The notes beneath the pieces are model-generated. The model was not told where the DNA came from. It saw nothing but the letters and a program-made list of their open reading frames with translations, and searched no databases. From the sequence record PP496436.1: DNA of 64,000 nucleotides; one strand, written 5' to 3'. How positions within the stretch are numbered: the stretch's first letter is position 1; the number at the start of each line of letters is the position of its first letter. Shown piece after piece: positions 18,268 to 59,459 of this stretch. The translations under genes were made by a program, and so were the position numbers.

Positions 18268-19871
18268 TTGTTCCACTCCTTGCGAGCCTTTAGCTGGGCT
18301 TCGGTAGGGGCCACCCGGAATCGTGTGTTCTGGGGCGACAAGTTCTTGAGCAGTGTGGTGGTCACACATTCGTGCGGCGTGATATGCAGCAGCAGGTCAC
18401 TGGCTCGGGTATACGACACGTATTGAACGTGGGGCAGCTGGCCGTCTTCACAGTCGAACCAGTCGTCGATCACCGCGACTCGTTCACTCTCCATCCCCTT
18501 CGCACCCCATGAGGTGTTAAGTTCCACACCTTTGCCGTGGTCATTGGCAATGATCTTGGTGATGAACGTCTTCACTTCGGCAGCGCTACCAAGGTCCCAG
18601 TTGGTGACGATGTACAACGCAGCGTCTGCGGCATCCTTGATCAGTGGTTCCTTTGCCTCCTTACGCAAATCATCCAACGCCTTAACGAAGTCAAGAGTGG
18701 ACTTGCGACCACAACGCATGGCGACACCAATCACCTGCTCAAGCACTTTGGCTTTCTTGAAGGTAACCTCCAGTCCGCGATCCATGTACTCCAGCGCGAT
18801 GCGGATCAGATGCTTGTTGCGGGCGCTGACCACACGCTGCACGTCGAACTTGATCATGCTCTTGATGCGGTACGGGTCCTTCTTGGTGTGCGCCGTCAGC
18901 ATCTTGACTTGCCCACCCTCGGCGAAGGCTTCAAGCGGCACATCGGGGAATCGACCCTTGACGAACTCGACGATCTTCGATTTGGACCGGTACGTGGTGG
19001 TAGACGGCAATCTCTTAGCGTTGAACTCCTTGAACATGTCAGCCATGCCCGCGCTCAACCCACCTCGGAACGCATAGATGGCCTGCCATGGATCACCGAC
19101 GAAGACGAACAACATGCCCGGCTTCAACCGGCGGAACAGGCGCAGTGTGTCATGCTGCACAAGGTTGAAGTCTTGGAACTCATCGACGAACAACACGTCC
19201 GGCAGGATCTTCGCCAGCGTGGCGTACTGCGTGCGGATAAAGCTGTTGGCCAGAACCATGCGGCTCATGTCGTTGAAGTCTACCGACGACGTGGTCTCAT
19301 CACTGGCTTCCAGCGCCTCACATATTTCAGGAAGCAGTGGCACCACCTTCTCATGGGGAATCAAGAAGCGGTACTTGCCGGTGATCAGTTCCTTGATCTG
19401 CTTGGGGTCGCTGTAGGGAATGCCCAATTCACGGATACGCTCTCCGTGCCAGCGGATGTCCTTGTTCACACGAGGCCCGTCTTGGGGGAACAGTGCGTCC
19501 ACCACCTGGAACCACTTGTCGAACATGATCGGTACGGCCTTGGCACCCGTCAACGTCTTGAACAACTCCAGCCCGTAGCTGTGCATGGTGGAACTGGAGA
19601 CCGCCCGATCCTTAATACGCTGATCGAACACCTTGGCGTTGTCCGTGTTGAACACGATGGCGCGCATGGTCAGCTTCGGGCACTCTTTACGAATGCGGCG
19701 GATAGTCTCGATGATCAGGGTGGTCTTACCCGATCCGGCACCGGCGTCGATGCCCACTGCGTCTTGTGGCTTGCCGGTGTACAAGTCTTTAGGCATCGAC
19801 TTGGCTTTCTTCAAGATCTCGTTGAAGATGTCATTCTGTTGCTTGGACCAAACTCTTTCAGTAGTGGACAT
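18264..19871 (-). CDS. UvrD/Rep-like SF1 DNA helicase
   Basis: 'AGAGSGKT' (I), 'VDEFQD' (II), 'VGDPWQAIYAFRG' (III), 'TYRS' (IV), 'AKGMES' (V), 'YVSYTRA' (VI). Confidence 0.92.
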   Translation of the reverse strand: MSTTERVWSKQQNDIFNEILKKAKSMPKDLYTGKPQDAVGIDAGAGSGKTTLIIETIRRIRKECPKLTMRAIVFNTDNAKVFDQRIKDRAVSSSTMHSYGLELFKTLTGAKAVPIMFDKWFQVVDALFPQDGPRVNKDIRWHGERIRELGIPYSDPKQIKELITGKYRFLIPHEKVVPLLPEICEALEASDETTSSVDFNDMSRMVLANSFIRTQYATLAKILPDVLFVDEFQDFNLVQHDTLRLFRRLKPGMLFVFVGDPWQAIYAFRGGLSAGMADMFKEFNAKRLPSTTTYRSKSKIVEFVKGRFPDVPLEAFAEGGQVKMLTAHTKKDPYRIKSMIKFDVQRVVSARNKHLIRIALEYMDRGLEVTFKKAKVLEQVIGVAMRCGRKSTLDFVKALDDLRKEAKEPLIKDAADAALYIVTNWDLGSAAEVKTFITKIIANDHGKGVELNTSWGAKGMESERVAVIDDWFDCEDGQLPHVQYVSYTRASDLLLHITPHECVTTTLLKNLSPQNTRFRVAPTEAQLKARKEWNK

Positions 19872-19937: not shown

Positions 19938-19998
19938 GCGTATAGCAATCGAATACGTGGAATTAGCCCTTAACGGCGTCCCCACTAGCGGAGAACAC

Positions 19999-21477
19999 AT
20001 GAAATCTGTAGCCGTTGACTACCAAAAGATAGCCAAGGAATGCCAGTGTACCGAGCTGCCTTCTAAGGTAAGAGTTACGCGTGCACGGGTCTATCCAAAC
20101 TTGAGGACGTGCCTACTCTTCCTCAAGTACGATGCCAAAGGCGATCTGGTGCAAGCCGAGATCACTGCGCCGTACGACACTTCCACCGAGCCAAAGGTGC
20201 GTGTGCTCAAGCACCCGGACAAGAAGTCCGACTTCCTTTCATTATATAGAGCGCTGATCCGCCATCAGATCATACCCGAGTCTATTCCGAAGAAAGGTAA
20301 CGGGATTGCACCGACGCTGGAGGTAATCGGCACACTGGTGAGCCTGCTGCCGGAACGGGATGTCGAAACCTTCCGAACCCTGACCCCGGCCATCCAGACT
20401 GGCAGCGTCATGTACGTCCCTCTGGTTACGTCCCGGCCAATGCCCATGGTGCAACACTGGATACCCGTTGACCAGCATTCAGAGCTGGGCATGATCGAGC
20501 TGGTCGATACGGATAGCAAGCCTTTCCTTAATCAGTGGGTCAACAGGTTGAGCAACACCGCCACCGGTTATGTGATCTACACCCCGGAAGGCTCACACGG
20601 TCAGGAACTCGCCTGCTTCCGTGTGCCCAATGTGCAAGGAGAGGAACTGTGCGTGGTCAAGAAGGTGGACTTCACCCTTACCGTTGCTCGCACCCTCAAG
20701 CCGGTACTGACCGTCTCCACCAAGAGTACGCGTGCCGTATCCCGCATTCCCCTACCCCACTATCTGATGCTGCGCAATCACCACATCAAGGTTGGCACGG
20801 TTATTTCCCTGCGGCGTAACGACCGAGGTGGGTTGGTGTACCATGAGACGGTGGCAGAGGAAGGGATGACACCTCTGCCACTGTGCCCACATTGCCATAG
20901 TGGATCTGTGCTGCGAAGTAGTAGCAATGACGTGTACTGCAATAACGATTCATGCCGAGGCCTAGCCATCGTGCGACTTCGCTACATCTTGAACAACAAG
21001 CTGGACGTCAAGTACCTGAGTCAGAACAAGGTGACGGCGTTGGTCAACGACAAGCAGGACCTGTTCAGCTTGCTCAAGACACCGACTCACCTATTGCGGC
21101 ACAGAGCGGGCTTCGGTGCACGTACGGTGGATGCGCTGGAAGAGAAGCTGAACACTATCGCCGGTCTTCCACTGCACACGCTGGCCGAGATGTCCTGCGC
21201 TTTCTACAACGTGGGTGTGCCCCCGCTGGATGAGATGGTGTTCAAGAAGATCTTTTCCGTGATGTCGCTTGACCACCTGAAAGCACTGCCCTCCACCGGT
21301 AAGATGTACAGCCAGTTGCTCGACATCGAAGGTATCCGCAACAACCGCGCAGTGGCTTTCCTCGCTGGTTGGCCTGCATTTCAACAGTGGATGATAGATC
21401 TTAACGCTGCCCTACAGTCTCGTAGCGCAATCTCCTCCACGGTAAATAACCCGAAACAAATTCGAGGTGTTAAATGA
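19999..21477 (+). CDS. ligA: NAD-dependent DNA ligase-like protein, degenerate adenylation motif
   Basis: OB-like 'LKPV...HHIKVGTVISLRR', Zn finger 'CPHC...YCNNDSC', HhH 'GFGARTV' and 'LLDIEGI'; motif I reads YPNLRT instead of EPKLDG; no BRCT. Confidence 0.65.
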   Translation: MKSVAVDYQKIAKECQCTELPSKVRVTRARVYPNLRTCLLFLKYDAKGDLVQAEITAPYDTSTEPKVRVLKHPDKKSDFLSLYRALIRHQIIPESIPKKGNGIAPTLEVIGTLVSLLPERDVETFRTLTPAIQTGSVMYVPLVTSRPMPMVQHWIPVDQHSELGMIELVDTDSKPFLNQWVNRLSNTATGYVIYTPEGSHGQELACFRVPNVQGEELCVVKKVDFTLTVARTLKPVLTVSTKSTRAVSRIPLPHYLMLRNHHIKVGTVISLRRNDRGGLVYHETVAEEGMTPLPLCPHCHSGSVLRSSSNDVYCNNDSCRGLAIVRLRYILNNKLDVKYLSQNKVTALVNDKQDLFSLLKTPTHLLRHRAGFGARTVDALEEKLNTIAGLPLHTLAEMSCAFYNVGVPPLDEMVFKKIFSVMSLDHLKALPSTGKMYSQLLDIEGIRNNRAVAFLAGWPAFQQWMIDLNAALQSRSAISSTVNNPKQIRGVK

Positions 21478-22238
21478 ACAATCAAAACAGAACTCGTATC
21501 GCTGTGCTTGTCGGCGGCGGTCTGGACTCACATGCGTACATGGTATTGAAAGCCGACCAGCCTCAGACAGACTTCATTCATGTGGACTACGGCCAGCGGG
21601 TTGCAGTAGCCGAGAGAAACGCCGTGTTGCAAATGGCTGAGAAGCTGGGCATTGCCCGCAGCCGGGTGTACACGCTGATCTGCAACAAGAAGAATCACAT
21701 GCGCAAGGTCAATGACGGTGTGGGTGTGTTGTTTGGCACCGGCCCGGTCGAGATGGACAATGCGTTTGTTAAGGGGCGTAACCTGTTCCTGATTCAGAAG
21801 GCCATCGAGCTGGGCTACGGTCACGTGCACCTGACGCTGACCCAAGAGCGTGGCCGGATGTTCCCCGATGCCGATCTGGCATTCGTCCAGCTGGTGGACA
21901 ACCTGATGCACCGCAGTTATGACGTGAGGGTGTCCGCACCCTACATCATGGAAGACAAACACCGGGTGATGTTCAAGGCGTATCGGCACTGTCCCGAGTT
22001 CATCGATATGTCTTTCACGTGCTGGGTAGGTCCTTATGTGGAATGCGGAACGTGCCCGCACTGCTACAAGAAGGAAAAGATTCGAGCCGAGATGATCGTT
22101 GAGAAGATTGAATACGATCTCAGCAAGGATGAACGTGAGGCGCAGTGGGAGCAAGTCAAGGCAGGCTACGGCGACGCGTTGAAGCCCGCTGAGACCATCA
22201 ACATGAACATTCAGGTTGTTGACGGGGAAATGAAATGA
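21474..22238 (+). CDS. queC: QueC-like protein (copy 1)
   Basis: 'VLVGGGLDS' PP-loop, 'VDYGQR', 'FVKGRN', 'FPDA', 'FTCW...CGTCPHC'. Confidence 0.85.
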   Translation: MNNQNRTRIAVLVGGGLDSHAYMVLKADQPQTDFIHVDYGQRVAVAERNAVLQMAEKLGIARSRVYTLICNKKNHMRKVNDGVGVLFGTGPVEMDNAFVKGRNLFLIQKAIELGYGHVHLTLTQERGRMFPDADLAFVQLVDNLMHRSYDVRVSAPYIMEDKHRVMFKAYRHCPEFIDMSFTCWVGPYVECGTCPHCYKKEKIRAEMIVEKIEYDLSKDEREAQWEQVKAGYGDALKPAETINMNIQVVDGEMK

Positions 22239-22996
22239 ACAAGTTCTTAGGTTGGTTCAAGCGTCTGCTGGGTAAGGAGCAAAAGGCGGTAACGATGACA
22301 ATGACCGACGCCAGTGGCAAGTTGGTCACCATTCATATACCTAAAGGTGCTGGGGTTGAGTACACCTTGTCGAAGTCGGGTGCCCACTTGAACGTCTCGG
22401 TCAAGGACGACATCTTCGTATTGAGCACGAACGGTGCTGGAGGCGGTGGGGGTGGCCGCGGTAGATCCAAACCTGGTGGCCCCGTCCATCCGCCCGTGCA
22501 TCCGCGCCAAACCGTCCCAGTGGGTCCAGGCGCCCCGAACATGGGTTGCGCTGGGGACGCACCGAGTGGAGCAGGTGTAACGTCGCCAGTGGGCGCTCAA
22601 GCTTCGTTCCCTATCGGTGCCCGAGCCACTGTTTCTGGTGGTGGCCGCGTTGGTGGTCTGGCGGGTGACGGACGGGAACACAGAGAACTCGGAGGTGCAC
22701 CCGGTCCCGGCGGAGATAGCTTCGTGCCCTCTCCAATCCGTAGTAGTGACCGAGCCTATCGCATCCGCGGTCTGTACTACGTCATTACGACTCGAAAGCT
22801 TACAGGTGAGGAGTACCCGACCCACGAACTTCTGCACTGGGGCCTTCGAGACATAGAACTCATGGGCAAGTTCTCAACGGTCCGTGAAGCTATCGACGAA
22901 CTCAAGAGTAAGCTGGGTATCGTGTTAGACGATATTACGGACTATCAGGTTGACTCCATTCCCAAACGAATGTGCAAACCACCGCACAAATCTTGA
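22235..22996 (+). CDS. Gly/Pro-rich hypothetical protein
   Basis: 253 aa, central Gly/Pro/Ala low-complexity tract, overlapping start with QueC copy 1. Confidence 0.6.
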   Translation: MNKFLGWFKRLLGKEQKAVTMTMTDASGKLVTIHIPKGAGVEYTLSKSGAHLNVSVKDDIFVLSTNGAGGGGGGRGRSKPGGPVHPPVHPRQTVPVGPGAPNMGCAGDAPSGAGVTSPVGAQASFPIGARATVSGGGRVGGLAGDGREHRELGGAPGPGGDSFVPSPIRSSDRAYRIRGLYYVITTRKLTGEEYPTHELLHWGLRDIELMGKFSTVREAIDELKSKLGIVLDDITDYQVDSIPKRMCKPPHKS

Positions 22997-23034
22997 GCGG
23001 GTAAATGGCTCGCAACTAATCCGGAGACACTAGA

Positions 23035-23853
23035 ATGACCACTACACCCCCGAAGATTCTTGTCGCATTCAGCGCTGGCACAGATTCAACCACTGCGGCC
23101 TACTACTATCGCAAGCTCGGCTATCAGGTAACGCTGGCCGTGTTCGATGACGGCGCATGCAACGATCCGCTTGACCCTCTGTACGATCCGAACAAGCCGA
23201 AGGACTTGACCAACTTCTCGGATGAGTTCTACGATTACGTACGGATTCACCAAGAGCATACGGAAGGTCATCTGCAGTTCGACTTCGTGGAGATTCGTTA
23301 TCCGCAACTCGCATTGCTGGAAGCCAATAAGACGGCCAAGCCCGGTCGGGACAATGCGGCAGCAGCAGAGGCTGACGGCTTGGGCTTCTGGGTCGGCTTC
23401 AAGGGCCTGATGGCAATGTTGCTGATGAGCCACGGCGCCGCCAATGGTTACGAGGCAGTAGTCTTCGGCCACATGCCGTACAACAACCATTACGAAGATG
23501 AGCTGCCCCAGAACTTCGAGCTGCTGCGTCAGTACATGGTTACGGCCTATGGCAGCCGAGTGGAAATTCCTCAGATCTACCACCCGTTCTATCGACCTAA
23601 TTTCGATACCAAGGAAAAGGTTATTGAGCTGGCGCAGGCAATCGGCGTGCCCTTGCGAGATACCTATTCGTGCCGCCGAGGTGAAGTAGAAACCCGAGGC
23701 ATCCTCCTGCCACTTCTGCGTGGCGGTAAATCCAACTACGTGAGCCCCACCTACCGCTGGAAGCATTGCGGTACGTGTGAGAACTGTGTCGAACGCAAGC
23801 GAGCCTTCGCGGCGCTGGGCATGAAAGATCCTGCCCCTTATATGGAACATTGA
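23035..23853 (+). CDS. queC: QueC-like protein (copy 2, more divergent)
   Basis: 'VAFSAGTDS' PP-loop, 'TYSC', 'HCGTCENCVERKRAF' Zn cluster. Confidence 0.75.
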   Translation: MTTTPPKILVAFSAGTDSTTAAYYYRKLGYQVTLAVFDDGACNDPLDPLYDPNKPKDLTNFSDEFYDYVRIHQEHTEGHLQFDFVEIRYPQLALLEANKTAKPGRDNAAAAEADGLGFWVGFKGLMAMLLMSHGAANGYEAVVFGHMPYNNHYEDELPQNFELLRQYMVTAYGSRVEIPQIYHPFYRPNFDTKEKVIELAQAIGVPLRDTYSCRRGEVETRGILLPLLRGGKSNYVSPTYRWKHCGTCENCVERKRAFAALGMKDPAPYMEH

Positions 23854-23854
23854 T

Positions 23855-24844
23855 ATGGCCCTTTCAACCTGGCCGCTGACCGAAGGTGAACTCGGTCAGG
23901 GCCTCGTCAACGAACTGAATCGTACCAGCAAGGCGCTGGTGAACCGGAGTATGTGGTCTTTGCCATTGCTCCGGCGTTTGTTTTATCGGCGCACCGAGAT
24001 TGGTGTCCCGGAGCTACTCCACGTCTGTACCAGCATTCATCGGGGCAAGACTTACTTCTGCCTGTTGGTGAACTTCCGAGACGTGGTGATGGGCAATCCC
24101 GACCAGTATGGCTGGGATCTGGCGGGCCGCTGGTTGTTCTACGACGTTGACCTGCTGGACACCCCGCCGTTCAAAGCGGTGAAGAAGTCCATTGAGTCCC
24201 GTGCCACCAAGACCGAAGTGTCGTACGGTCAGGCTTTCCTCCCTTACGAGAAGAGTGATGAGGAATACGTCAAGTCCCTCAAGGGCAACTACAAGCCCCA
24301 CATCTTCGGCGAGAAGTCCAAGCAGTATCGCGTCTTATCGTACTTCGGGCTGGCAGCGGTAGCCCCCTTCGCTCAAGCTCTGATGTGCTTCGGCATTCAG
24401 CGCGCCGAAAGGTTTATGGCCGAAGGGCAGAACGATGTCCTCCCCGAGTTGTACGACCTGCCACTGCAACTGGCGGGGCTCGGCAATGTCTCGAACACCC
24501 GCATCGGCTGCGTGACCATTGAAGTCGAAGGTACGATGGTAGGTGCTATCAGCATGTATGCTCAAGGTGCACTGGGCGACGCGGACATGCTGTATCTGCA
24601 CGAGATCCTCATCGACCCGGACCCCAAGTGGAAGAGCTTGTCGCTGGCTACTCTGCTGCACATTCATGCCGTCCTGTACTATCGCCGATCCCTCCAGAAA
24701 GACATAGTGTTCAACCTGGGCTATAACTTCGCCGATGGGTATCAAGGTTACAAGGATGTCTTCCGTCCCAACGCCAACGCCTTCAACGTGTACACCGAGA
24801 TGGACACCGAGCCCGGCGTACCACTGTCCTGTTTCAAGGGGTAA
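23855..24844 (+). CDS. Fem/Acetyltransf_6-like GNAT-fold protein 1
   Basis: C-terminal 'LATLLHIHAVLYY...FNLGY...GYKDVF' resembles the Fem/BioF2-like F(D/N)xG...YK.xF tail. Confidence 0.5.
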   Translation: MALSTWPLTEGELGQGLVNELNRTSKALVNRSMWSLPLLRRLFYRRTEIGVPELLHVCTSIHRGKTYFCLLVNFRDVVMGNPDQYGWDLAGRWLFYDVDLLDTPPFKAVKKSIESRATKTEVSYGQAFLPYEKSDEEYVKSLKGNYKPHIFGEKSKQYRVLSYFGLAAVAPFAQALMCFGIQRAERFMAEGQNDVLPELYDLPLQLAGLGNVSNTRIGCVTIEVEGTMVGAISMYAQGALGDADMLYLHEILIDPDPKWKSLSLATLLHIHAVLYYRRSLQKDIVFNLGYNFADGYQGYKDVFRPNANAFNVYTEMDTEPGVPLSCFKG

Positions 24845-24847
24845 GAC

Positions 24848-25849
24848 ATGTACACTCCGTATTCCCAAAACAGCCTTATGCAGTCGATCCCTCTGGATGA
24901 CCAAGGTACATTCGCCCATCCACCGTACACGATGGAAGGAGAGTTCACCGACGTGTGGACGAATCCCAGCCTGTACGGGTTTGTTAGCTTGTTGAACGGT
25001 CAGAGCAATAGCCGGGCATATCGAGACTGGATGACCACCCACAATCTTCCAGCCCTGTTCCTCGGTCCGCACCATGAAGACAACTTCTGGTTTGAATTCA
25101 GCACTGGTCTCGATTCCAACTGCACGCTGGATTACAACGAGATCAACGTCCAAGGCAACCTGCAGGACTTCCTTGGGAGATTGACGTCATCTCGCCGTCG
25201 CTCCGTGCTCAAGGCAAAGGAAACGGATACAATGATCCACAAGGCAGGCTCGGTAGCCAACTTCAACCTGTATCATCCGGTAGAGGGTAGGCTGTATAGT
25301 CTGACCGTGATTCACGAACGCCGGGTGATGAAAGATATTTCCGAGTTTATCGAATCGAAACTCTGGAGTATGAAGCATACGCCTACTGACCTCACGTACG
25401 GTGCATTCACCACTCTGATGGACTACATCCGGTTGAAGCAGCGAGATGACACGCCGCTGGGCCACCGGTTGCGCAACGTACAGCTCTTGGTTATCCGAGA
25501 TGAACGCTCCGGGTTTATCGTGTCGGTACACCTGGTGGCGATCACCACGTTGAAAGATGAGTCCATGAACCCCATCAAGACGTACATGCACTCCTTCGCA
25601 CGCATCACTGTTCTCCCTGCACGCATCGCCTTACTTGCGTTGATCAAGGCGGTTCAAGAGTTAAACGTCACCAGTCAGTATGCGTCCCGTGCACTGGCGA
25701 AGATCGACTATCTTGATGTGAGCAACGTGGTGCTGTCCGAGCGAGAGCAGTACAAGTCGGACTTCTTCACCGGCAAATGCCAAGTGCGTGCGTGGGCATC
25801 CCCGGCGCTGCTGGAACGGCAGTTACCTTTCGTCACGCCGATCCCGTAA
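24848..25849 (+). CDS. Fem/Acetyltransf_6-like GNAT-fold protein 2
   Basis: 'LQDFLGRLTSSRRRSVLKA' and C-terminal 'DYLDVS...QYKSDF'. Confidence 0.5.
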   Translation: MYTPYSQNSLMQSIPLDDQGTFAHPPYTMEGEFTDVWTNPSLYGFVSLLNGQSNSRAYRDWMTTHNLPALFLGPHHEDNFWFEFSTGLDSNCTLDYNEINVQGNLQDFLGRLTSSRRRSVLKAKETDTMIHKAGSVANFNLYHPVEGRLYSLTVIHERRVMKDISEFIESKLWSMKHTPTDLTYGAFTTLMDYIRLKQRDDTPLGHRLRNVQLLVIRDERSGFIVSVHLVAITTLKDESMNPIKTYMHSFARITVLPARIALLALIKAVQELNVTSQYASRALAKIDYLDVSNVVLSEREQYKSDFFTGKCQVRAWASPALLERQLPFVTPIP

Positions 25850-25903
25850 CTCTGTAAATGATGGGAACAGCCCCACCATCACTTCATCTCTAGGGTAGTT
25901 CCC

Positions 25904-26956
25904 ATGCAAGACTTCGATAAGATAATGATCGATAGTAGTTTGACATCCAATCTGGTGTACGCAGGGTTGGGTAACTTGATCACGCCCCGCGCACTTGACC
26001 TGCTGATCGAACATCAGGCTGCACTGGAAAACGTATACGCCAATCTGGAAACGGCCTATCAGATTACCCCACCCTTCCCCTGTGAAGCTGCATTCAATTC
26101 CCCTGACAAAGATCCTGTGCTGGTCGCCGACTATCTGAATGCTACTCCCGCCATCCGTTGCGGAGAGCTGGCTGGATTCGAGGCAAAGCCCGGCAGTTAC
26201 TACCATGCGCCCGCCGCTGGTATCTCCCCGGAACATCGCATTGACGTACGTGGTATGTCTTTGCGTGAGTTCGACCACTATCTGGTTGAGCGTAAGGAAG
26301 TATCCCGTATCACTACCAATCTGGTGGCCGACAAGTTCCGCTGTGAGACGCATGTGTACAAAGTGGATGAAGATCATATCCTGATCCATGACGCCGAACG
26401 AGTTGGGATCAGCCAGACGGACTTCCGCCGCATGTGGGCGCAGACCCGCCGCCGGGAAATCGCTGAAAACTATCTGCAGTACATGCCCATCGAAGATTCC
26501 GCCAAGGATGATCAGGTGGTGCGACTGATCAACGAAGACGTAGCACGGGTGTTCGCCCAGAACGTCGACTACGACCGCATGATTCCGCCCGAGCTGATCT
26601 TCGATGGTCAGGGCAAGCCGGTGCTGACCGTGCTGAAAGATTGCAACGCCAAGGTATTGGGCATTGGTGTGTACGTCATCTACAAGTCAGCTGACCCAGA
26701 GCATGACAGCGAACTGCACTGGCGTGGCGCTTTCTACGATCACGAAGATCCTCGCGTAGCATCCATGGGCATTGAACACGCTCTGGTTGCCAGCGCACTG
26801 CACACAGCGTACGCCTGCAACGCGGTCCTCTATCTGACCAAGGCACCTAAGTCCGTGTGCGACGCATGGAAGACGGAAGTGCACCAAGGTTACGGTCTGG
26901 TCCGTAATGCGATGCCGGAACTGTCTGACACCCCTTACATTCTGGCTATCCAGTAA
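25904..26956 (+). CDS. GNAT-fold-like protein 3
   Basis: 'FDHYL', 'KVLGIGVYVI...WRGAFYD...MGIEHALVASAL' resemble GNAT beta strands and helix (weak). Confidence 0.35.
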   Translation: MQDFDKIMIDSSLTSNLVYAGLGNLITPRALDLLIEHQAALENVYANLETAYQITPPFPCEAAFNSPDKDPVLVADYLNATPAIRCGELAGFEAKPGSYYHAPAAGISPEHRIDVRGMSLREFDHYLVERKEVSRITTNLVADKFRCETHVYKVDEDHILIHDAERVGISQTDFRRMWAQTRRREIAENYLQYMPIEDSAKDDQVVRLINEDVARVFAQNVDYDRMIPPELIFDGQGKPVLTVLKDCNAKVLGIGVYVIYKSADPEHDSELHWRGAFYDHEDPRVASMGIEHALVASALHTAYACNAVLYLTKAPKSVCDAWKTEVHQGYGLVRNAMPELSDTPYILAIQ

Positions 26957-26989
26957 ATAGCCGGTAACTCCATCCATTGAGGTACTTCC

Positions 26990-29074
26990 ATGAAATCCGT
27001 GAACCCCATCTTCAAACACGTTCCCCAGTTCGACTGGCCTGTCATTCCCCGTGCGCAGTGGGAAGAGATCATCAAGGGAAAAGAGCATGTGATGTTCGAC
27101 TCCTTCTCGCAGCTCGCTCAGGTGCTGGCTATCCCGGTGAGCAGTTACCAGTTCTACTTCGAAGATGGGTCCACGTTGTTCGCCGGTCCCGAAGCAACCT
27201 TCACCGCCGCCCCCTATCCGTTGTATCAGGATCTGGAATTCGTCCTGACCCCGGATGAGACGTTGGTGCCGGGTCTTGCACTGGATACCAAACCGTGGGG
27301 CCTGTACACCGACGAATGGGTGGACAACTACGAAGGTGCGGACAAGGAAGACATCGGCAACAAGACCGGGTTCGAATTCATTCCGCTGTCGGACGCTTTG
27401 AAACTGGTGGTCCTCAACACGGAGACCATGCAGCTCCAGTACACTGCAATCGAGAGCTTCACGTACGACGGCGTGACTTACGTATACCTGCTGGCCGATG
27501 GCGTGTGCTGGGTACTGGCGGGCAAGTCCGGTGGTCTGGTTGCCAGCGAGCATGACAAAGGCGCGGCGTTCATCATGGTGTCCCATCCCGAGTTCGCCGG
27601 GTGCAGCGTAGACAACATGTACCCAAGTGAGTTCGGTGAAGCGGAAGCGACGTTCTACGTTCAAGACGAGGAACACAATTACCTGGACGCGGCTAACCGC
27701 ATCTTCGAGGAAGCCAAGGACGTAGGCGCTGGCACGTTCCTGACCATTGAGACCGGTGATGGATTGCCGACCGCGCTGGCGTACAACCTGCGGTACAGTG
27801 ATGTGGCCCACGTTAATCTGCCGATGCACAACATCCACCAGTTCACTTCTCTTCACGTACGACTGGGTGAGACGCCTAACTTCTCCGAGGCCCCGGAAGC
27901 GTGCCGCATGAAAGAGGTGATGGAGTATCTGGCGGACCCTGAGTCCCCGGTAGATCATTACTGGTCGGCCATCATGGTACTGGAGAAGAACTTCCCCGGT
28001 TTCGCCGACGCCCTGAAAGACTCCAGTGTCCCGACCCGTGACATCGTGCACTCCAAACAGGCGTTCAGCTTGGAGATCGATCGCCAGTTCGGCAAGGAAG
28101 TGGCAAGCAAGATCGGGCTGAACACTGGCGTATTCGCTCAAGTGAAAGACCGTGATGAATGGCTGGTACGCAAACACGAGTTCCCTACCGATAAGGTGGC
28201 CGTCAAGTACAACACCAAACACTTCATCGGCATCTTCGACAAGGACGAGGTATCGAAGTCCATCAACATGTGGCTGGCTGGTCAACCCGGAGAGTCGCTG
28301 ATGATCGAAGAGTACTTCGGTGAGGGCAATCAGGAATTCAACCTGTGCTACGTGATCAACGAAGATTTCGTGCAGCCGACGCTGTTCCTGTGCGAAGTCA
28401 ACAAGATCCTCGGCAATGACACCGGCGGCAAAGGTGGCAACACGCTGGCCTGCCATGATGCTCGTATTAACAAGTACCCTGAGTTCTTCGAGCCGGTCAA
28501 TAATGCGCTTGCTAACCTGCATGAGCACGTGGAAGGTGTGAAGGGCTGGGTTGACCTGAGCTTCATGGTTCGCGACGGTATCCCATACTTCACAGAGTGG
28601 TGCATTCGCATCGGCTGCTCCAACAACGCCACCATCGTGCGCCAGATGGAGACCCCGCTCGACGTCCTGTTGACTAACGTGGTCAACAAGGTGCATACCG
28701 AGCTGTCTTGGAAACACTCCATGTCTGTCAGCGTGGACATCTACAGCATGCCGCTATCCGCAGGCAACGACGCCAACATGCAGTTCACCGACTCGCTGAC
28801 CACTCCGGTAGAGATGGTGTCCCCGCTCAATCTGGAACTGGCGGCGGAGAGTTTCTTCGACCCGATTGATTCGGCCTGGAACGCGGTGTACGACGGCTAC
28901 ATCGTCGAGGCGTATAATCGCTATGGCACCGTCTCGGGGTACTCCACCAACTGGAACTTCGCCTGCAATGCGGCGTATAATCACTTGAAAGATCAGTCGG
29001 TGTTGTACGGAGCGTACCGCGAAGCGCCTGCCCACCATGACCCACTGACTCTGTTCCCTTTCCTCAAGGCGTAA
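26990..29074 (+). CDS. PurD/GARS-like ATP-grasp ligase with extra N-terminal domain
   Basis: 'FSLEIDRQFGK', 'VAVKYN', 'LMIEEYF', 'NKILGNDTGGKGGNT', 'FTEWCIRIG' parallel PurD 'LEGSK.F', 'VIKADG', 'VIEEFL', 'HKR..DGDTGPNTGGMG', 'EFNCRFG'. Confidence 0.7.
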   Translation: MKSVNPIFKHVPQFDWPVIPRAQWEEIIKGKEHVMFDSFSQLAQVLAIPVSSYQFYFEDGSTLFAGPEATFTAAPYPLYQDLEFVLTPDETLVPGLALDTKPWGLYTDEWVDNYEGADKEDIGNKTGFEFIPLSDALKLVVLNTETMQLQYTAIESFTYDGVTYVYLLADGVCWVLAGKSGGLVASEHDKGAAFIMVSHPEFAGCSVDNMYPSEFGEAEATFYVQDEEHNYLDAANRIFEEAKDVGAGTFLTIETGDGLPTALAYNLRYSDVAHVNLPMHNIHQFTSLHVRLGETPNFSEAPEACRMKEVMEYLADPESPVDHYWSAIMVLEKNFPGFADALKDSSVPTRDIVHSKQAFSLEIDRQFGKEVASKIGLNTGVFAQVKDRDEWLVRKHEFPTDKVAVKYNTKHFIGIFDKDEVSKSINMWLAGQPGESLMIEEYFGEGNQEFNLCYVINEDFVQPTLFLCEVNKILGNDTGGKGGNTLACHDARINKYPEFFEPVNNALANLHEHVEGVKGWVDLSFMVRDGIPYFTEWCIRIGCSNNATIVRQMETPLDVLLTNVVNKVHTELSWKHSMSVSVDIYSMPLSAGNDANMQFTDSLTTPVEMVSPLNLELAAESFFDPIDSAWNAVYDGYIVEAYNRYGTVSGYSTNWNFACNAAYNHLKDQSVLYGAYREAPAHHDPLTLFPFLKA

Positions 29075-29077
29075 TCC

Positions 29078-30238
29078 ATGAGCACTCCATTCCAAGAGTT
29101 CACCCTAGAGGGGTGGATTCAACATATGAATCAGGATCAAATCTGGAAGCGGTACGCCAACGATCATCCTAACAGGGTTGAGTTCAGCCCTGTTTGGCGT
29201 GACGAGATGTATCGGTTGATGGTACAGTTCAAAGAGCTGCTGCCGATGTCGTTCTCCAATCCGGTGTACGGCTTCACCGAAGGCTATCTGGAAGGGTTCG
29301 GACTCCAGCCCTTCTACGGCGATGATCCTTTCAATCCGATGGTTCAGCCTCTTAGCCATCCTCTGGTTCACGTGGGCTTCCCACTCACACTGGACGAGAT
29401 CGTAGCGAGCGTGCGGGACTGGCAGTCCCTGAGCGATCACCTGGGGCGTCCGCAACTGGTCGATACATTCGAGCCGGTTTCACTGCTAGCGCGCAACCTG
29501 TACGAGCCTAACGCGCTGCTGGCCGTACGGAACAAGGAAGAGATCGTGATGAACGGGGGCACGCCCGCGAACTACTTCCTCTGGCTGAATAGCCCGGTCA
29601 CCGAACTCAAAGACGACTTCGACGTTTATCTGGCCAGCCTGACCAAGAAGCGCCGCTACAAAGTGAAGCAGGCGTTGGCGACGGTAGGCACCGAAGAGAA
29701 TCCCCGGATCAGCGTCAGCACCGGGTCTCGTTTCGGCGAAGGGCTGTTGTCCGATCAGGTGGACAGCATCCTTGCGACGTTCGAAGATCCAGTGGACATC
29801 GAGTGCATGCTTCTTCAGTTGCTATTCGGGGTTGCAACCTGCAATACCCATCCGCATCTTGTCGATCTGGTGTGTGCAGACCAGCAGTTGGGGATCTTCA
29901 TCAAGCGTAACGGCCACACGATGAACTTCCTCTACAACCGCGACCCGGACAACCGCGCTGATTCAGGCATAAACCTGCTTACCCAGTACGTGCGCCATCT
30001 GCACATGAACCGACCGGAAGGCGTTATGTACGTGGACCCGACATGCCGATATCGGCCTGACGAGGACAGTATGAACACCTACAAGCGGGTGATCACCAAC
30101 GAGAACCGGTATCACCCAATGCCGTTCGTCTCGGCTGACCCTGCGCACATCGAAGGTGTGCTTACCCCGGCGTTCATTGCAGGCCATTGGCAGATGTCGG
30201 CGTCCAACGGACCGGCCAACCCCGAGATGATGGAGTAA
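29078..30238 (+). CDS. Fem/Acetyltransf_6-like GNAT-fold protein 4
   Basis: 'DDFDVYLASLTKKRRYKVKQAL' is the typical sfeeYL..LskkrR..lR signature; C-terminal 'TYKRVI'. Confidence 0.65.
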   Translation: MSTPFQEFTLEGWIQHMNQDQIWKRYANDHPNRVEFSPVWRDEMYRLMVQFKELLPMSFSNPVYGFTEGYLEGFGLQPFYGDDPFNPMVQPLSHPLVHVGFPLTLDEIVASVRDWQSLSDHLGRPQLVDTFEPVSLLARNLYEPNALLAVRNKEEIVMNGGTPANYFLWLNSPVTELKDDFDVYLASLTKKRRYKVKQALATVGTEENPRISVSTGSRFGEGLLSDQVDSILATFEDPVDIECMLLQLLFGVATCNTHPHLVDLVCADQQLGIFIKRNGHTMNFLYNRDPDNRADSGINLLTQYVRHLHMNRPEGVMYVDPTCRYRPDEDSMNTYKRVITNENRYHPMPFVSADPAHIEGVLTPAFIAGHWQMSASNGPANPEMME

Positions 30239-30240
30239 CC

Positions 30241-31188
30241 ATGGCAAAGTCCAAAATGAGACGGTTGGCGATCAACCACATCTATGACTTCTACCCGTTG
30301 TATCAGGTGATGTACGGGCGTGGCATGGAGACCAAAGCGTTCGAGGTATCCAAGTTCGCCAAGATGGTTATGGACTTCGAAGCCTCGACCAGTACTCGCC
30401 GGAAGTGGGACGTGCTGGAGCCCTTCAGCGGTATCAGTGAACACGAACACTTCTTCGCTGCGACCGGCCTGAACATCGAGCACTACACCGGCATGGACAT
30501 TGTGGTTCCAGATGGGGCCACGAACGTCATTCAAGGGGACATCATCACCGACACCCTTCCGTTTCACGTCAACGCAGTGTTCGCCTTCTACTACAGCTTG
30601 CAGAATGTACGGGACGCGGCGACCGGCATGCACACGCGGGCCAAGCTGGTGGAGTTCTTCGACAACATCATTGGTCATCTGCAAGTAAATGCGAACAAGA
30701 GCCGTATGCCCGCAGTGTTCGCGTTCCACCTTGACCAGCCTGAAGATCCTAATTACTATCTGACGTCCCGTGCCGACGTTGGAGGTGAACAGTCATGGAC
30801 TGCACCCGCGTGTGGTCTGCTCGGGCAGTGGGTCAAGTGCAAGCCGACTGACACTCTGGAAGTCAAGTGCAATCTGGATACCTGGTACAACCGCGTGCAG
30901 TGCACAGCGTATGATCAGGCAGAGGACATTCAGATTCTGGTAAATGGGAAAGTAACCGCTGTCGTAGACATCGAGCAGCCGTTCACCCATCGGGTCTGGA
31001 CCGAGCATGAGGTCATCGATATCCTGCGGGGTCTGGACTACAATCTGCACTTCCACATGTACAACGGCACCCTCTCCAATTACGACTTCTTGATGACCCG
31101 GCTGGACGACAAGCCCGTTCCCGGCGATGAAGAGTCTAATACTAATCAGATGACAACTGATATGTTGGTTGTCGTTAATCCGAGGTAA
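30241..31188 (+). CDS. Class I SAM-dependent methyltransferase 1
   Basis: 'VLEPFSG' (motif I), 'YTGMDI', 'IQGDI', 'VNAVFAFYYSL'. Confidence 0.75.
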   Translation: MAKSKMRRLAINHIYDFYPLYQVMYGRGMETKAFEVSKFAKMVMDFEASTSTRRKWDVLEPFSGISEHEHFFAATGLNIEHYTGMDIVVPDGATNVIQGDIITDTLPFHVNAVFAFYYSLQNVRDAATGMHTRAKLVEFFDNIIGHLQVNANKSRMPAVFAFHLDQPEDPNYYLTSRADVGGEQSWTAPACGLLGQWVKCKPTDTLEVKCNLDTWYNRVQCTAYDQAEDIQILVNGKVTAVVDIEQPFTHRVWTEHEVIDILRGLDYNLHFHMYNGTLSNYDFLMTRLDDKPVPGDEESNTNQMTTDMLVVVNPR

Positions 31189-31190
31189 GC

Positions 31191-32108
31191 ATGGCTAAGC
31201 CCAAGGTTCCAACCAAGACGATCCCCACGTTGTACCAAGACTGGGGATTGTACAGCGCCATCTGCGAACTGCCGCAGGAGACGATGCTGATGATGTCGCG
31301 CTTCGTGGCAGACCGAACCATTGAGCACGCTGAGCGTATCGATCAGGTAATGGTCGAGATCATGGAACCCTTCAGCGGCCCAATCCCGTATTACGAGCCA
31401 GACATCCGCAGCTTCCTGACCCGCGCTAAGCTTGATCTGTACACGTACGATCACGTCGAATACCTGGATCACGGCAAACTGTCGGAAGACAACGGCATCA
31501 TCATCGGTGACATTACCACCATCGATCTGAAGCAGAAGTACGACGTCATCTACGGCAGTTACGGCAGCTTGGCCTGCCTGCTGCTGGATCAGACGCACAA
31601 CAAAGCGTACGAGAAGTCGCACGCGGCGCTGGTCAACATCCGCAACCACCTGAAACCCAACGGCATCTTCATCCTGAACGCCAACGGGTCCAGTGAGAGC
31701 CTACTGAACAACCTGCTGAACTCCGATGAGCCGGATCAGGAGATTCGCGTTCGTCCGGGATCGCAGCTTGGCAAGAAGTTCGGCATCAAGCCGGACAGCA
31801 ACGCGCTGCTTCGCTTCACCTATCACGTGGAGTACGACCGACGCACCACCTGCACCATGTGCCACTACAGCGATATGGTGCTGTCTGTAAATGGGGTTGA
31901 CATCCAGCGCTGGGAGGTGGAATCCCCGACGTATCTTGCTCCGCTGGACGAACCCGAACTAATTCGAATGGCAGGTATGGCGGGTTTCAATCTGGACAAC
32001 ACTGAGTTCTACGGATTGGACACCACCGGTTATCCTGCCTTCTTCAAAATGGATACGGTCTGCGACGGGTCATGGTCACCCGCCGAGTTCGTAGTCTTTC
32101 GCACCTAA
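31191..32108 (+). CDS. Class I SAM-dependent methyltransferase 2
   Basis: 'IMEPFSG', 'IIGDITTIDLKQKYDVIYGSYGSL', 'NHLKPNGIFIL'. Confidence 0.85.
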   Translation: MAKPKVPTKTIPTLYQDWGLYSAICELPQETMLMMSRFVADRTIEHAERIDQVMVEIMEPFSGPIPYYEPDIRSFLTRAKLDLYTYDHVEYLDHGKLSEDNGIIIGDITTIDLKQKYDVIYGSYGSLACLLLDQTHNKAYEKSHAALVNIRNHLKPNGIFILNANGSSESLLNNLLNSDEPDQEIRVRPGSQLGKKFGIKPDSNALLRFTYHVEYDRRTTCTMCHYSDMVLSVNGVDIQRWEVESPTYLAPLDEPELIRMAGMAGFNLDNTEFYGLDTTGYPAFFKMDTVCDGSWSPAEFVVFRT

Positions 32109-32118
32109 CGAGGTTCCT

Positions 32119-33354
32119 ATGAGCGTTATCATCCCCACCGTAGCGATGGAGAGTGGTCAGCCAGACATGATCATTCAAGGCTGTTCCACTGGTCGCGTCT
32201 CTATGGCCGAGCCTAACGAGAGCGCCAAACCCAAGTCTTCCAAGAAGCTGTACGAACGTGAAGACCTGATGGCGTACGACAGCGAGTCGGAGCACTGGCA
32301 GAAGCAGTTGGCCCGCCGCTACGCTCACCATGGTGAGATGGTCGGTGTGTTGAACAACGTCGAGGTGGTGCCGGAAGCCACCTACCAGAACTTCGACATG
32401 AAGATCACTCCGTACACCGCGCAGTTGATGGATCAGAACGACCCCAACTGCCCGATTCGTCTGCAGTACATGCCGACCAACAAAGAGCTGGAGTCGATTC
32501 AGCGTGAAGAGACCATGCACAACGAGCTGGGCGAGGAAGAGGACACCGTCCCCGGTACCTCGGTCGTGCACCGCTACCCGCGCCGCGTCTTGTTCCTGAC
32601 CACCACCCAGTGCGCTAGCTTCTGCCGTTACTGCACCCGTGCACGCATCGTCTCTCACGGCGGTGAAGCGGCTATCACCAAGAAGCACCTGGACGCCAGC
32701 ATCGACTACATCGCCTCGAACAAGGACATAGAAGACGTGTTGCTGTCCGGCGGTGACCCGTTCATCCTGCCAGACAACAAGCTCGACGAGATCCTCGGTC
32801 GTATCCGCGCCGAAGCACCTCACGTTCGCTTCCTGCGTATTGGTAGCCGACTGCCGGTACAGATGCCGACTCGTATCACTCCAGAGCTGTGCGAGATTCT
32901 GGAACGCCACAACGTCAACATGGTCAACATCCATGTGAACCACCCGAAAGAGGTCACCCCACTGCTGGCCTCCCGGATGAAGATGTTGCGCAAAGCTGGC
33001 GTGATGATCGGTAATCAGGCGGTCCTCCTGAAAGGCGTGAACGACTCCATCGAGGTGATGACCGAGCTGTGCTTGCGCATGGTCGAGATGGGTGTGCGTC
33101 CGTACTACGTCTACTCCAACGATCCGGTTGCGCAGGCCGCACACTTCACCGTCTCGCTCCGTGATATGCTGGACATCAACGAAGGCATGCGTGGCTTCCT
33201 GTCCGGCCCGGCAATGCCCACCTTCGTGGTGGACGGCGTGGGTGGCTTGGGCAAGATGCCCGTGCAGAAAGAGTATGTGACAGTACTGGGGAGTGGTAAG
33301 ATCTGGGCCACCAACTTCGAAGGAATGACCACTCGCATGCCCCATCTGGAGTAA
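32119..33354 (+). CDS. kamA: Lysine 2,3-aminomutase (KamA/EpmB family radical SAM-PLP enzyme)
   Basis: 'HRYPRRVL', 'CASFCRYCTR', 'LLSGGDP', 'NQAVLLKGVNDS', 'PYYVY..D', 'VVDGVGGLGKMP' (PLP lysine retained). Confidence 0.92.
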   Translation: MSVIIPTVAMESGQPDMIIQGCSTGRVSMAEPNESAKPKSSKKLYEREDLMAYDSESEHWQKQLARRYAHHGEMVGVLNNVEVVPEATYQNFDMKITPYTAQLMDQNDPNCPIRLQYMPTNKELESIQREETMHNELGEEEDTVPGTSVVHRYPRRVLFLTTTQCASFCRYCTRARIVSHGGEAAITKKHLDASIDYIASNKDIEDVLLSGGDPFILPDNKLDEILGRIRAEAPHVRFLRIGSRLPVQMPTRITPELCEILERHNVNMVNIHVNHPKEVTPLLASRMKMLRKAGVMIGNQAVLLKGVNDSIEVMTELCLRMVEMGVRPYYVYSNDPVAQAAHFTVSLRDMLDINEGMRGFLSGPAMPTFVVDGVGGLGKMPVQKEYVTVLGSGKIWATNFEGMTTRMPHLE

Positions 33355-55778: not shown

Positions 55779-56750
55779 ATGAAAGATATGCGCTATACCG
55801 AACTGTTCTATTCCCTCCAAGGTGAGGGTTTACGCGTTGGAGTGCCGTCGGTATTCTTCCGCATGTTCGGTTGCAACTTCGAGTGCAAGGGATTCTCCAA
55901 TCCTGAAATGAAAGACCCCAACGTGATCCCGGCAATAAATCTGCTGTCGATCAACGAAGCTGACCTGGAGCTAGGTTGTGACTCTCGTTACAGCTGGCAC
56001 AAGGACTATCGCAACCTGGCTATCAAAGCTGCACCTCATGAGGTGGCCAACACCCTGATCGACTTCACGAAAGAGAAGCACCGGGCGGCGGTGGCTCGCT
56101 GGCCCAAGCGTAACCGTGCAGGCAATGTCGTCCGTTTGATCCCCGGCCAGACTACGAGTGAACTACTCCAGATTGCCACGATGGCTCATGTGCCTGACTG
56201 GGTCTTCACCGGCGGTGAACCGTTCATGCAGCAAGAGCAACTCGAAGCCCTGCTGCGGCACACCATGTACGTGGTGGATGAAGAACAGGTGGAGTTCGGC
56301 GGCAATGGACTTCCTATGTTGACCTTCGAGACTAACGCCAGCATCAAGATGCGTGACTCTATGGTTAGCTGCCTGCGTGAGTACAATGACAACTTCGGGG
56401 ACTTGCACTTCTCCAACAGCCCCAAGCTGTCGTTCACCGGAGAGCATCGCAGTGCGGCGCTCAAGCCCGAAGTTATCGGCCAGCAAGAGCAAACGGGTGG
56501 ATCCAGTTCTTTCAAGTTCGTGGTACGCCCCGCACGTGAAGACTTCGATGAGCTGATGGAGTTCATGCAAGAGTACATGTCGTACACCGGATCGGGCAAT
56601 CTGGAAGGCATTTACGTCATGCCGGTCGGTGCCAGCCTACATCAACAGCAGGCCATCGCCACACAGGTTGCCGAGCTGGCACTGGAATACGGCCTGTCCT
56701 ACAGCCCCCGACTCCAGTGTGACCTGTGGGCCAACAAGATAGGGACGTGA
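55779..56750 (+). CDS. queE: 7-carboxy-7-deazaguanine synthase (radical SAM)
   Basis: 'ELFYSLQGEG...PSVFFRMFGCNFEC...GCDSRYSW', 'FTGGEP', 'FETNA', 'SPKL', 'SPRLQ'. Confidence 0.88.
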   Translation: MKDMRYTELFYSLQGEGLRVGVPSVFFRMFGCNFECKGFSNPEMKDPNVIPAINLLSINEADLELGCDSRYSWHKDYRNLAIKAAPHEVANTLIDFTKEKHRAAVARWPKRNRAGNVVRLIPGQTTSELLQIATMAHVPDWVFTGGEPFMQQEQLEALLRHTMYVVDEEQVEFGGNGLPMLTFETNASIKMRDSMVSCLREYNDNFGDLHFSNSPKLSFTGEHRSAALKPEVIGQQEQTGGSSSFKFVVRPAREDFDELMEFMQEYMSYTGSGNLEGIYVMPVGASLHQQQAIATQVAELALEYGLSYSPRLQCDLWANKIGT

Positions 56751-58718: not shown

Positions 58719-59459
58719 ATGGCTATTGATGCACATAAGTATCCGTTGTTGGCGGCGGCTCAAGACCGACTCATCGAGTCTGGTCAGCGCTATTTTGCGA
58801 ATGACAATATCCATCCGGTATTTGAATACCTGGACAACATGGCATTGCCTATGCCAGTCGGGGCTCAGACACTGGAGCAGATGAAGGAGGCTGTTCAAGA
58901 GAAGTACGGCGAGCTGCTGGAACTCCTCTTGATCGATTGGGCTGCGGATCATAACTCCGAAGGTACCCCGCGCCGTGTCGCCAAGATGCTGGTCGAGGAA
59001 ACCTACAAGGGTCGCTATCAGCCGACGCCGAAGATCACCGCGTTCCCCAACGACAGCAAGCGTACCCAGATGATCGTGATCGGGCCGCTGCGCGTTGAGA
59101 GCCAGTGCAGCCATCACCATCAGAACATCCGGGGCTGGGCATGGGTCGGTGTTATGCCGTCGGAAGATGGTACACTGATCGGTCTGTCGAAGTTCAGCCG
59201 CCTACTTGATCATATCTGCCGCCGTCCTCAGATCCAAGAGGAAATGGTTGCTCAGGTGTGTCACCAGTTGAACGATCTGGTCAAGGACAACCTCGGTGTC
59301 GCGGTCGTGATCAACGCAGAGCACCAGTGCATGGCCGTTCGGGGCGTGCAAGAGCCGTGTGCCCAAACCGTTACGTCGGAGATGCTGGGTGCGTTCCTCG
59401 AACCTGGTGTTCGTCAGGAGTTCCTGACCTACGTGCAAATGAACCCAGCCCCGTGCTAA
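58719..59459 (+). CDS. folE: GTP cyclohydrolase I
   Basis: 'TPRRVAKM', 'SQCSHH', 'GLSKFSR', 'RRPQIQE', 'HQCMAVRGV'. Confidence 0.95.
   Translation: MAIDAHKYPLLAAAQDRLIESGQRYFANDNIHPVFEYLDNMALPMPVGAQTLEQMKEAVQEKYGELLELLLIDWAADHNSEGTPRRVAKMLVEETYKGRYQPTPKITAFPNDSKRTQMIVIGPLRVESQCSHHHQNIRGWAWVGVMPSEDGTLIGLSKFSRLLDHICRRPQIQEEMVAQVCHQLNDLVKDNLGVAVVINAEHQCMAVRGVQEPCAQTVTSEMLGAFLEPGVRQEFLTYVQMNPAPC

Follow-up and report, generated by a model that had tools for sequence, protein, structure and literature searches.

Two tandem non-canonical QueC-family genes of Pseudomonas phage vB_PpuM-Illi-2 as candidates for consecutive amide ligations in a 7-deazaguanine pathway

Introduction

The genome of Pseudomonas phage vB_PpuM-Illi-2 (PP496436.1, 201 kb) carries two QueC-like genes close together on the same strand, which raises the question of why a phage would keep two members of this family when neither has the complete set of canonical motifs. 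They lie in a stretch of 64,000 nucleotides, referred to here as the window, that is 100% identical to the database record (window position = record position minus 137178; coordinates below are window positions unless stated otherwise). Copy 1, here called the GGG type, encodes 254 amino acids (aa) (21474..22238, + strand; Pfam QueC, 5.6e-19), and copy 2, the FDDG type, encodes 272 aa (23035..23853, + strand; Pfam QueC, 4e-12). GenBank labels both as 'QueC-like queuosine biosynthesis protein' and nothing more, and neither gene is mentioned in the paper describing the phage collection. The same locus is found in eight sister phages of P. putida KT2440/PaW85, at a DNA identity of 85–96%. The comparisons described below suggest that the two proteins are conserved, non-canonical QueC-family ATP pyrophosphatases that may act one after the other, as two amide ligases and not as one enzyme.

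Results

Motifs of the Two QueC-Like Proteins

Motif correspondences were taken from a MAFFT alignment with E. coli QueC and from an hhalign comparison of the two clade profiles (99.5% probability). In copy 1 the PP-loop reads G14-G-G-L-D-S19, and the YxQxHxxE region has become Y39-G-Q-x5-E47, which lacks the His and is one residue longer. The VPxRN region reads V-K-G-R102-N103, so that the Arg and Asn are present (G101-R-N103), while at the position of YPDC there is F130-P-D-A133, in which the aromatic residue and the Asp are kept and the Cys is gone. All four zinc cysteines are present (C183-x7-C191-xx-C194-xx-C197), with a spacing of seven residues between the first two and a Trp instead of a Tyr after the first. 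Aligned with E. coli QueC, copy 1 thus retains YxQ, the Glu, RN, aromatic-x-Asp, K162 and the zinc site.

Copy 2 departs further. Its PP-loop, S13-A-G-T-D-S18, fits the looser SxGxDS and not SGGxDS, and is followed by an insertion of about 75 aa. Where others have DYGQ it has F37-D-D-G, with both Tyr and Gln gone; V120-G-F122-K123 aligns to PxRN with the loss of Arg and Asn; and Y153-E-D-E156 aligns to YPDC, again with the aromatic residue and Asp kept and the Cys gone. The four zinc cysteines are all present (C213-x31-C245-xx-C248-xx-C251), with a much altered spacing (x31) and an Arg instead of a Tyr after the first. The motifs of both copies are invariant in five sister phages. The original prediction, made from the letters alone, had read these departures correctly for copy 1 (GGGLDS, GRN, FPDA) and for copy 2 (SAGTDS, VGFK for PGRN, YEDE for YPDC, CxxCxxC), and both alignment methods agree with the assignments in copy 2. 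It erred in taking the missing Cys of YPDC in copy 1 for a lost zinc ligand: QueC binds zinc through its C-terminal C(x)8CxxCxxC motif, while YPDC lies at the mouth of the substrate pocket (PMC13329287).

On the QueC equivalog model TIGR00364 (cut-off 150.3 bits), copy 1 scored 62.4 bits and copy 2 only 22.6 bits. The closest solved relative of copy 1 is Cap9 (9nto, 1e-8), with B. subtilis QueC second (4e-5), and the PADLOC 'QueC' model gave it 64 bits, about level with Pfam QueC (69 bits). A word-index search with copy 1 returned its own family only, a scan of IMG/VR with the same query gave no matches, and the ESM Atlas showed a broad QueC-family likeness and nothing narrower; a profile search built on its relatives recovered a graded set of about 20 further proteins. 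For copy 2, only 12 proteins reached E<1e-10 in a HMMER scan of 1.84 billion representatives.

The residues that contact the substrate can be compared with those of two characterised proteins. In E. coli QueC, Y35 and R99 are essential and an aromatic residue is needed at Y131, with Y131F being partly active (PMC13329287). In the structure of Cap9 with CdnD, the conjugated deazaguanine stacks on Y115 and R86 and is hydrogen-bonded by D117, where Y115 and D117 are the Tyr and Asp of YxDC and R86 is the Arg of RN (10.1101/2025.04.06.647259). The equivalents in copy 1 are F130, R102 and D132, and in copy 2 they are Y153, F122 and D155. Since the Cap9 base-contact residues have equivalents in both, and the Asp is invariant in the GGG and FDDG clades described next, both copies probably still bind a 7-deazaguanine.

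Phylogeny and Selection

Copy 1 and copy 2 show no significant BLASTP similarity to each other. In a maximum likelihood tree of 116 sequences (the root being arbitrary), all 26 sequences with a Gly-Gly-Gly PP-loop, including copy 1, form a single clade (Shimodaira–Hasegawa-like approximate likelihood ratio test (SH-aLRT) support of 99), and copy 2 falls within a clade of 20 sequences (SH-aLRT 96). The two are not sisters, and lie in different halves of the tree. Both are separated from E. coli QueC and the QueC-type C-terminal domains of two Gat-QueC proteins (JG054 and MiCath), as well as from the QueC of Mycobacterium phage Saguaro and the ExsB of Vibrio phage nt-1.

Each clade has its own signature. 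Members of the GGG type have GGG[LI]DS in the PP-loop, YGQ-x5-E without the His, GRN, F-x-D-A in place of YPDC, and a zinc motif of the form TC[WY]-x6-9-CGxCxHC. The corresponding features of the FDDG type are SxGxDS, [FI]-D-D-G replacing D-Y-G-Q, G-[FYW]-K (with Val for Lys in P0009-P0011), [YF]-x-D-E, and SC...HCGxCxxC..R. In 26/26 GGG members the PP-loop Ser is replaced by Gly, the YxQxHxxE region has lost its His and Ala stands in for the Cys of YPDC, and the deviations of copy 2 are likewise fixed across the 20 members of its clade, so that they go beyond chance in both cases. Ordinary phage QueCs scored 80–134 bits on the hidden Markov model (HMM) of either clade, compared with 213–239 bits for two new members from IMG/VR (213–224 bits for these two on the GGG-clade HMM). 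Between Illi-2 and its sister phage Peetri, the ratio of non-synonymous to synonymous substitution rates (dN/dS) comes to 0.091 in copy 1 and 0.088 in copy 2 (dS of 0.6–0.7). Both genes are under strong purifying selection, and are neither recent paralogs nor decaying.

These results alter the picture of two paralogs with complementary deviations. Both do belong to the QueC family, by Pfam, and neither groups with E. coli QueC, Gat-QueC or ordinary phage QueCs; 'paralogs' is a loose term, however, for proteins of non-sister clades without significant BLASTP similarity, and the data give no support to complementary deviations, each being a clade-wide signature in its own right. Indirectly, the signatures and scores support the view that neither copy resembles an ordinary synthase of preQ0 (7-cyano-7-deazaguanine).

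Tandem Order and Exchange of Partners

FDDG-type genes close to copy 2 were found to follow a GGG-type gene in every case where the DNA upstream of them was available. This tandem order was found in 12 lineages: the Illi-2 group and the loci L021, L022, L023, L025, L026, L027/L028, L029, L030/L031, L038/L039, L041 and L042, the last two being IMG/VR contigs of 231 and 210 kb. A thirteenth (L020) is truncated. In most lineages the two genes overlap by 4–38 nt or are separated by a gap of 3–8 nt, while another gene intervenes in the window, L022 and L042. Proteins of recurrent families are encoded beside the pair, including those of about 330 aa, methyltransferase-like proteins of about 310 aa, a family of about 390 aa, a PurD-like ATP-grasp protein, a ligase-like protein, a KamA-type aminomutase and FolE; QueD and QueE genes are also among the neighbours.

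The two types have not evolved as fixed partners. When ten copy-1 proteins were compared with their ten copy-2 partners, the distances were uncorrelated (r = -0.001, Mantel p = 0.48), and patristic distances, compared in nine pairs, gave no correlation either (r = -0.18, p = 0.79), indicating that partners have been swapped between lineages. Both types are also found with other partners. The gene after the GGG-type QueC encodes an AsnB-like protein (glutamine amidotransferase (GATase)/Asn-synthase) in L032 and in the cultured Achromobacter phage Motura, and there is no FDDG type, the GGG type being the sole QueC-family gene found in the stretches examined. This QueC has the motifs GGGIDS, YGQx5E, GRN and PFPDA, and the compact Motura operon (L060:8540-14758, NC_049849) has the order QueD, QueC-like, AsnB, TGT (tRNA-guanine transglycosylase), hypothetical, QueE, hypothetical, FolE. 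Motura is a cultured jumbo phage, and no determination of its DNA modification was found in the literature searched. Conversely, L040 has an FDDG-type QueC without a GGG type, together with a canonical QueC (SGGQDS, YGQSH, VPARN, YPDC) and an ArcS-like DUF5591 protein, an arrangement that fits a role for the FDDG type downstream of the first C7 substituent. This locus (L040:5302-8696) encodes the ArcS-like DUF5591 protein, the canonical QueC (307 aa, with insertions), a 215-aa protein without assignment, and the FDDG-type QueC (P0021); it is possible that the Illi-2 pathway has an amidine-based counterpart here.

Tandem QueC genes of another kind were seen in three IMG/VR contigs (L048:5968-7436, L050:5968-7444 and L051:5968-7434), where two SGGLDS-type genes adjoin, one with FWDC and the other with YPDC. 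Neither belongs to the GGG or FDDG clade.

7-Deazaguanine Pathway Genes in Illi-2

Genes for other steps of 7-deazaguanine synthesis are present in the phage genome. GTP cyclohydrolase I (FolE), which catalyses the first step, is encoded at 59 kb of the window (58719..59459, + strand; Pfam, 3.8e-39), and 2 kb before it is a gene for a 323-aa QueE-like radical S-adenosylmethionine protein (55779..56750, + strand) similar to Motura QueE (3e-9). Its match to the QueE model is confined to the N-terminal ~37 residues and the iron-sulfur cluster region, and the Fer4_12 domain is split by a long insertion (residues 13–178), so it would be an unusually expanded QueE, if it is a QueE. Outside the window, a 400-aa protein annotated as hypothetical (record 17743-18945; L014:3744-4946) has PTPS/QueD matches in two separate stretches, at residues ~34–74 and 305–395, and may be a tandem T-fold QueD-like enzyme. 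A 456-aa TGT-like (DpdA-like) protein (record 80825-82195), encoded 77 kb away from the pair, is homologous over 376 residues (3e-30) to the DpdA-like TGT of the Motura DNA-modification operon. Neither QueF nor a third QueC was found in the Illi-2 genome. Given FolE and the QueD-like, QueE-like and TGT-like proteins, and with no QueF or third QueC, 7-carboxy-7-deazaguanine (CDG) is the expected substrate of at least one of the two copies.

Other Genes of the Operon

The operon opens with a gene for a 506-aa protein (19957..21477, + strand) that is weakly similar, in its C-terminal part, to NAD-dependent DNA ligases (TIGR00575, 1.4e-6, spanning residues 309–409; a DNA ligase in PDB matched at 0.013); a homolog with a Pfam OB_DNA_ligase match is found at the equivalent place in L021. 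Downstream of copy 2, family scans of the rest of the operon (23855..33354, + strand) revealed a PurD-like ATP-grasp protein (26990-29074, + strand) and a KamA-family amino-acid 2,3-aminomutase (32119-33354, + strand), along with three proteins of ~330–350 aa and one of 386 aa that received no assignment, and two of ~305–315 aa with a weak methyltransferase match, all encoded on the + strand. Other lineages, too, have homologs of several of these genes next to their QueC pair.

Between the two QueC genes lies an open reading frame (ORF) whose 253-aa product is conserved in its N-terminal and C-terminal domains and has a Gly/Pro-rich linker (22235..22996, + strand). It is a real gene, because in the sister phages its ends are conserved, the indels in its variable linker are in frame, and its dN/dS is 0.18–0.23. 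The protein gave no match in family scans and is not similar to the ORF that occupies this position in L022; the gene between the pair in L042 belongs to the ~330-aa family, and most other lineages lack the Gly-rich ORF altogether. It was considered as a conserved third partner of the pair and rejected as such, being a lineage-specific insertion that is absent or replaced by a non-homologous gene elsewhere. In Peetri, copy 1 (L016:11001-11825) is 20 aa longer than in the window, and the extra C-terminal tail (SSPIRSPDQAMIKSIRG) resembles a conserved segment, SPIRSSDRAYxIRG, of the Gly-rich ORF that follows; either a small duplication or a shift of the gene boundary could account for this.

Discussion

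A Proposed Two-Step Reaction and Its Alternatives

Our preferred interpretation, which we would place a little short of an even chance, is that the pair acts sequentially as two amide ligases. It builds on the family membership, clade signatures, purifying selection and recurrent tandem order of the two proteins and on the pathway genes of the genome, and would add to these the substrates, the order of the steps and DNA as the final target. Copy 1 would take the place of QueC in the phage 7-deazaguanine pathway (FolE, QueD-like, QueE-like and DpdA-like TGT), adenylating the carboxylate of CDG and passing CDG to an amine, and its product would be an N-substituted or plain 7-amido-7-deazaguanine (ADG), not progressing to the nitrile preQ0. 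An amine other than ammonia is made plausible by the KamA-family aminomutase of the operon. Copy 2 would recognise the deazaguanine through the aromatic residue and Asp of its YPDC counterpart, with a second aromatic residue replacing the stacking Arg and the rim of the ATP/substrate site rebuilt, and would form a second amide by adenylating another, more distal carboxylate on the growing side chain. The ATP-grasp protein, the ~330-aa proteins, the methyltransferase-like proteins and the aminomutase would extend or supply this side chain, and the DpdA-like enzyme would put the base into phage DNA. The two separate steps would thus be carried out by a GGG type at the QueC position and then by another amide former that adenylates a carboxylate.

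With somewhat less confidence, the GGG and FDDG types may be regarded as two undescribed enzyme classes, a CDG:amine ligase and a ligase acting on the carboxylate of an amino acid borne by the deazaguanine. Together with the ATP-grasp protein and aminoacyl-type transferases, they might then produce a peptide-like 7-amido-7-deazaguanine bearing amino acids, which a DpdA-like enzyme installs in phage DNA.

Several observations weigh against a sequential pair of ligases. Copy 1 retains most of the canonical residues and, given the partial activity of E. coli Y131F, its reaction could be no more than the formation of ADG or preQ0 from ammonia. Alignments at 20–35% identity underlie the residue equivalences, those behind the active-site geometry being at 20–30%, and the ~330-aa neighbours were without a match in family and PDB searches. 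Several lineages with the pair lack the aminomutase, which means that beta-lysine cannot serve as the amine in general. For the role of copy 2, the evidence from alternative partners comes from three loci (L040, L032 and Motura), each a single example, and the data would be compatible with action either on the free base or on DNA.

If copy 1 were a preQ0 or ADG synthase using ammonia, then only copy 2 would have a new role, either further amidation or the ligation of a side chain. We consider this unlikely, although it has real points in its favour: YxQ, the Glu, RN, aromatic-x-Asp, K162 and the zinc site are all kept, the GGG type occupies the QueC position in the Motura operon as the only family member found there, and other phages have been proposed to have a 'QueC*' that synthesises ADG (PMC10516641). 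Set against these are the three changes (Ser-to-Gly, the lost His and Cys-to-Ala) shared by every GGG member, the gap between the clade and ordinary phage QueCs (213–224 versus 80–134 bits), and a TIGR00364 score of 62 bits where the cut-off is 150. That the pair has left 7-deazaguanine chemistry entirely, and adenylates carboxylates of a peptide, a cofactor or some other modified base, appears improbable. PF06508 does take in LarE, GMP synthase and sugar amidotransferases (PMC13329287), and copy 2 has lost both YxQ and RN, but both proteins keep the aromatic-x-Asp and a QueC-type zinc site, features that are lacking or reordered in other PF06508 clusters. Furthermore, FolE, QueD, QueE, TGT or ArcS-like genes adjoin in L026 (uncertain), L027, L029, L040, L042 and Motura, and Illi-2 itself encodes FolE and the QueD-like, QueE-like and TGT-like proteins.

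A heteromer had been suggested for the pair, but an obligate heterodimer, in which copy 2 supplies an intact PP-loop Ser and copy 1 supplies RN and YxQ, is a poor prospect. Cap9 is a homodimer in its solved complex (10.1101/2025.04.06.647259), and in 12 lineages the two phage genes lie side by side, often with coupled translation; yet each copy has its own complete set of ATP-loop Asp/Ser, base-binding Asp and zinc residues, and an additional gene separates them in the window, L022 and L042. The incongruent trees, from which it follows that partners have been swapped, and the occurrence of the GGG type with an AsnB-like protein (L032 and Motura) and of the FDDG type with a canonical QueC (L040), argue against obligate complementation and fit two separate steps. 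The least probable of the alternatives is that one of the copies conjugates CDG to a protein of the phage or host, at its N-terminus or at a lysine, as Cap9 and QatC do, which could serve to subvert or mimic host defence. The Gly-rich 253-aa protein encoded between the copies would be one candidate, as the targets of Cap9 start with M(G/S)G(G/S)GG, and Cap9 is the best solved relative of copy 1, sharing YxQx5E and C-x7-C with it. The glycines of the 253-aa protein are internal, however, and its gene is absent or non-homologous in other lineages; no CD-NTase (a nucleotidyltransferase of the cGAS/DncV kind), QatA, QatB or QatD was found in family scans of the operon proteins, nor QatC by PADLOC; and the operons in which the GGG clade is found are DNA-modification operons that include a DpdA-like TGT.

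Should the two proteins indeed be consecutive amide ligases, their clades would represent a third and a fourth repurposing of QueC, on the phage side and as a two-step pair, following the two recently shown for Cap9 and QatC, in which nitrile synthesis has given way to amide ligation. The pairing of a GGG-type QueC with a following carboxylate-adenylating enzyme, either an FDDG-type QueC or an AsnB-like protein, would provide a simple genomic marker for phages likely to carry 7-deazaguanines with side chains. A peptide-like 7-amido-7-deazaguanine in DNA, if confirmed, would be a new chemical class of DNA hypermodification, present in many jumbo phages. Illi-2 and its eight sister phages are cultured on P. 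putida KT2440.

Comparison with Known Systems

Canonical QueC and the two phage proteins have in common the fold family (PF06508), the PP-loop, the four-Cys zinc site, the conserved Lys and the aromatic-x-Asp, and a place in the 7-deazaguanine pathway downstream of FolE, QueD and QueE. Copy 1 differs from it in GGGLDS, the longer YxQ motif without His, FPDA and C-x7-C, and copy 2 in FDDG, G-aromatic-K, YxDE, C-x31-C and the 75-aa insertion. Both fall far under the equivalog cut-off and belong to separate clades.

Copy 1 has its best solved relative in Cap9 (PDB 9nto) of type IV CBASS, an anti-phage signaling system based on cyclic oligonucleotides. They share the His-less Y/FxQx5E that is one residue longer, RN, the aromatic-x-Asp, and a spacing of seven residues, instead of eight, from the first zinc cysteine to the second. 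The chemistry of Cap9, an attack on CDG-AMP by an amine larger than ammonia that ends at the amide, is the one proposed for copy 1. Cap9 is smaller (~185 aa, compared with 254 aa) and its motif set is LxSGGxDS, Y/FxQx5E, RN, H-x4-YxDC and CE-x6-CxxCxxCxD, of which copy 1 lacks SGG, the Cys of YxDC and CE; copy 2 does not fit this set. Cap9 is encoded next to a CD-NTase and Cap10 and modifies a protein N-terminus, whereas copy 1 is part of a phage biosynthetic/DNA-modification operon. Since Cap9-like sequences (P0177, P0186 and P0188) keep SGGLDS and YxDC, and scans of the operon proteins gave no CD-NTase match, copy 1 is, by its motifs and setting, probably not a Cap9.

QatC, from the QatABCD system, is another QueC-family protein repurposed for amide formation with an amine other than ammonia, and its long zinc spacer (C-x19-C) recalls the C-x31-C of copy 2. 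It is larger (~400 aa versus 254 and 272 aa), has its own motif set, and is accompanied by QatA, QatB and QatD. Gat-QueC, and the phage operons with QueC and an AsnB-like protein, resemble the Illi-2 locus in coupling a QueC-type domain to a second amide- or amidine-forming activity, the difference being that the Illi-2 locus has as its second enzyme a QueC-family protein that lacks a glutamine amidotransferase domain. CmoY, an asparagine-synthetase homolog of Synechococcus phage S-B43, belongs to another PP-loop family and acts as a single enzyme on a different base, 5-carboxymethylcytosine, but as an ATP-dependent PP-loop ligase that joins glycine to a carboxylated DNA base (PMC12783734) it is the nearest proven analogue of the type of reaction proposed here.

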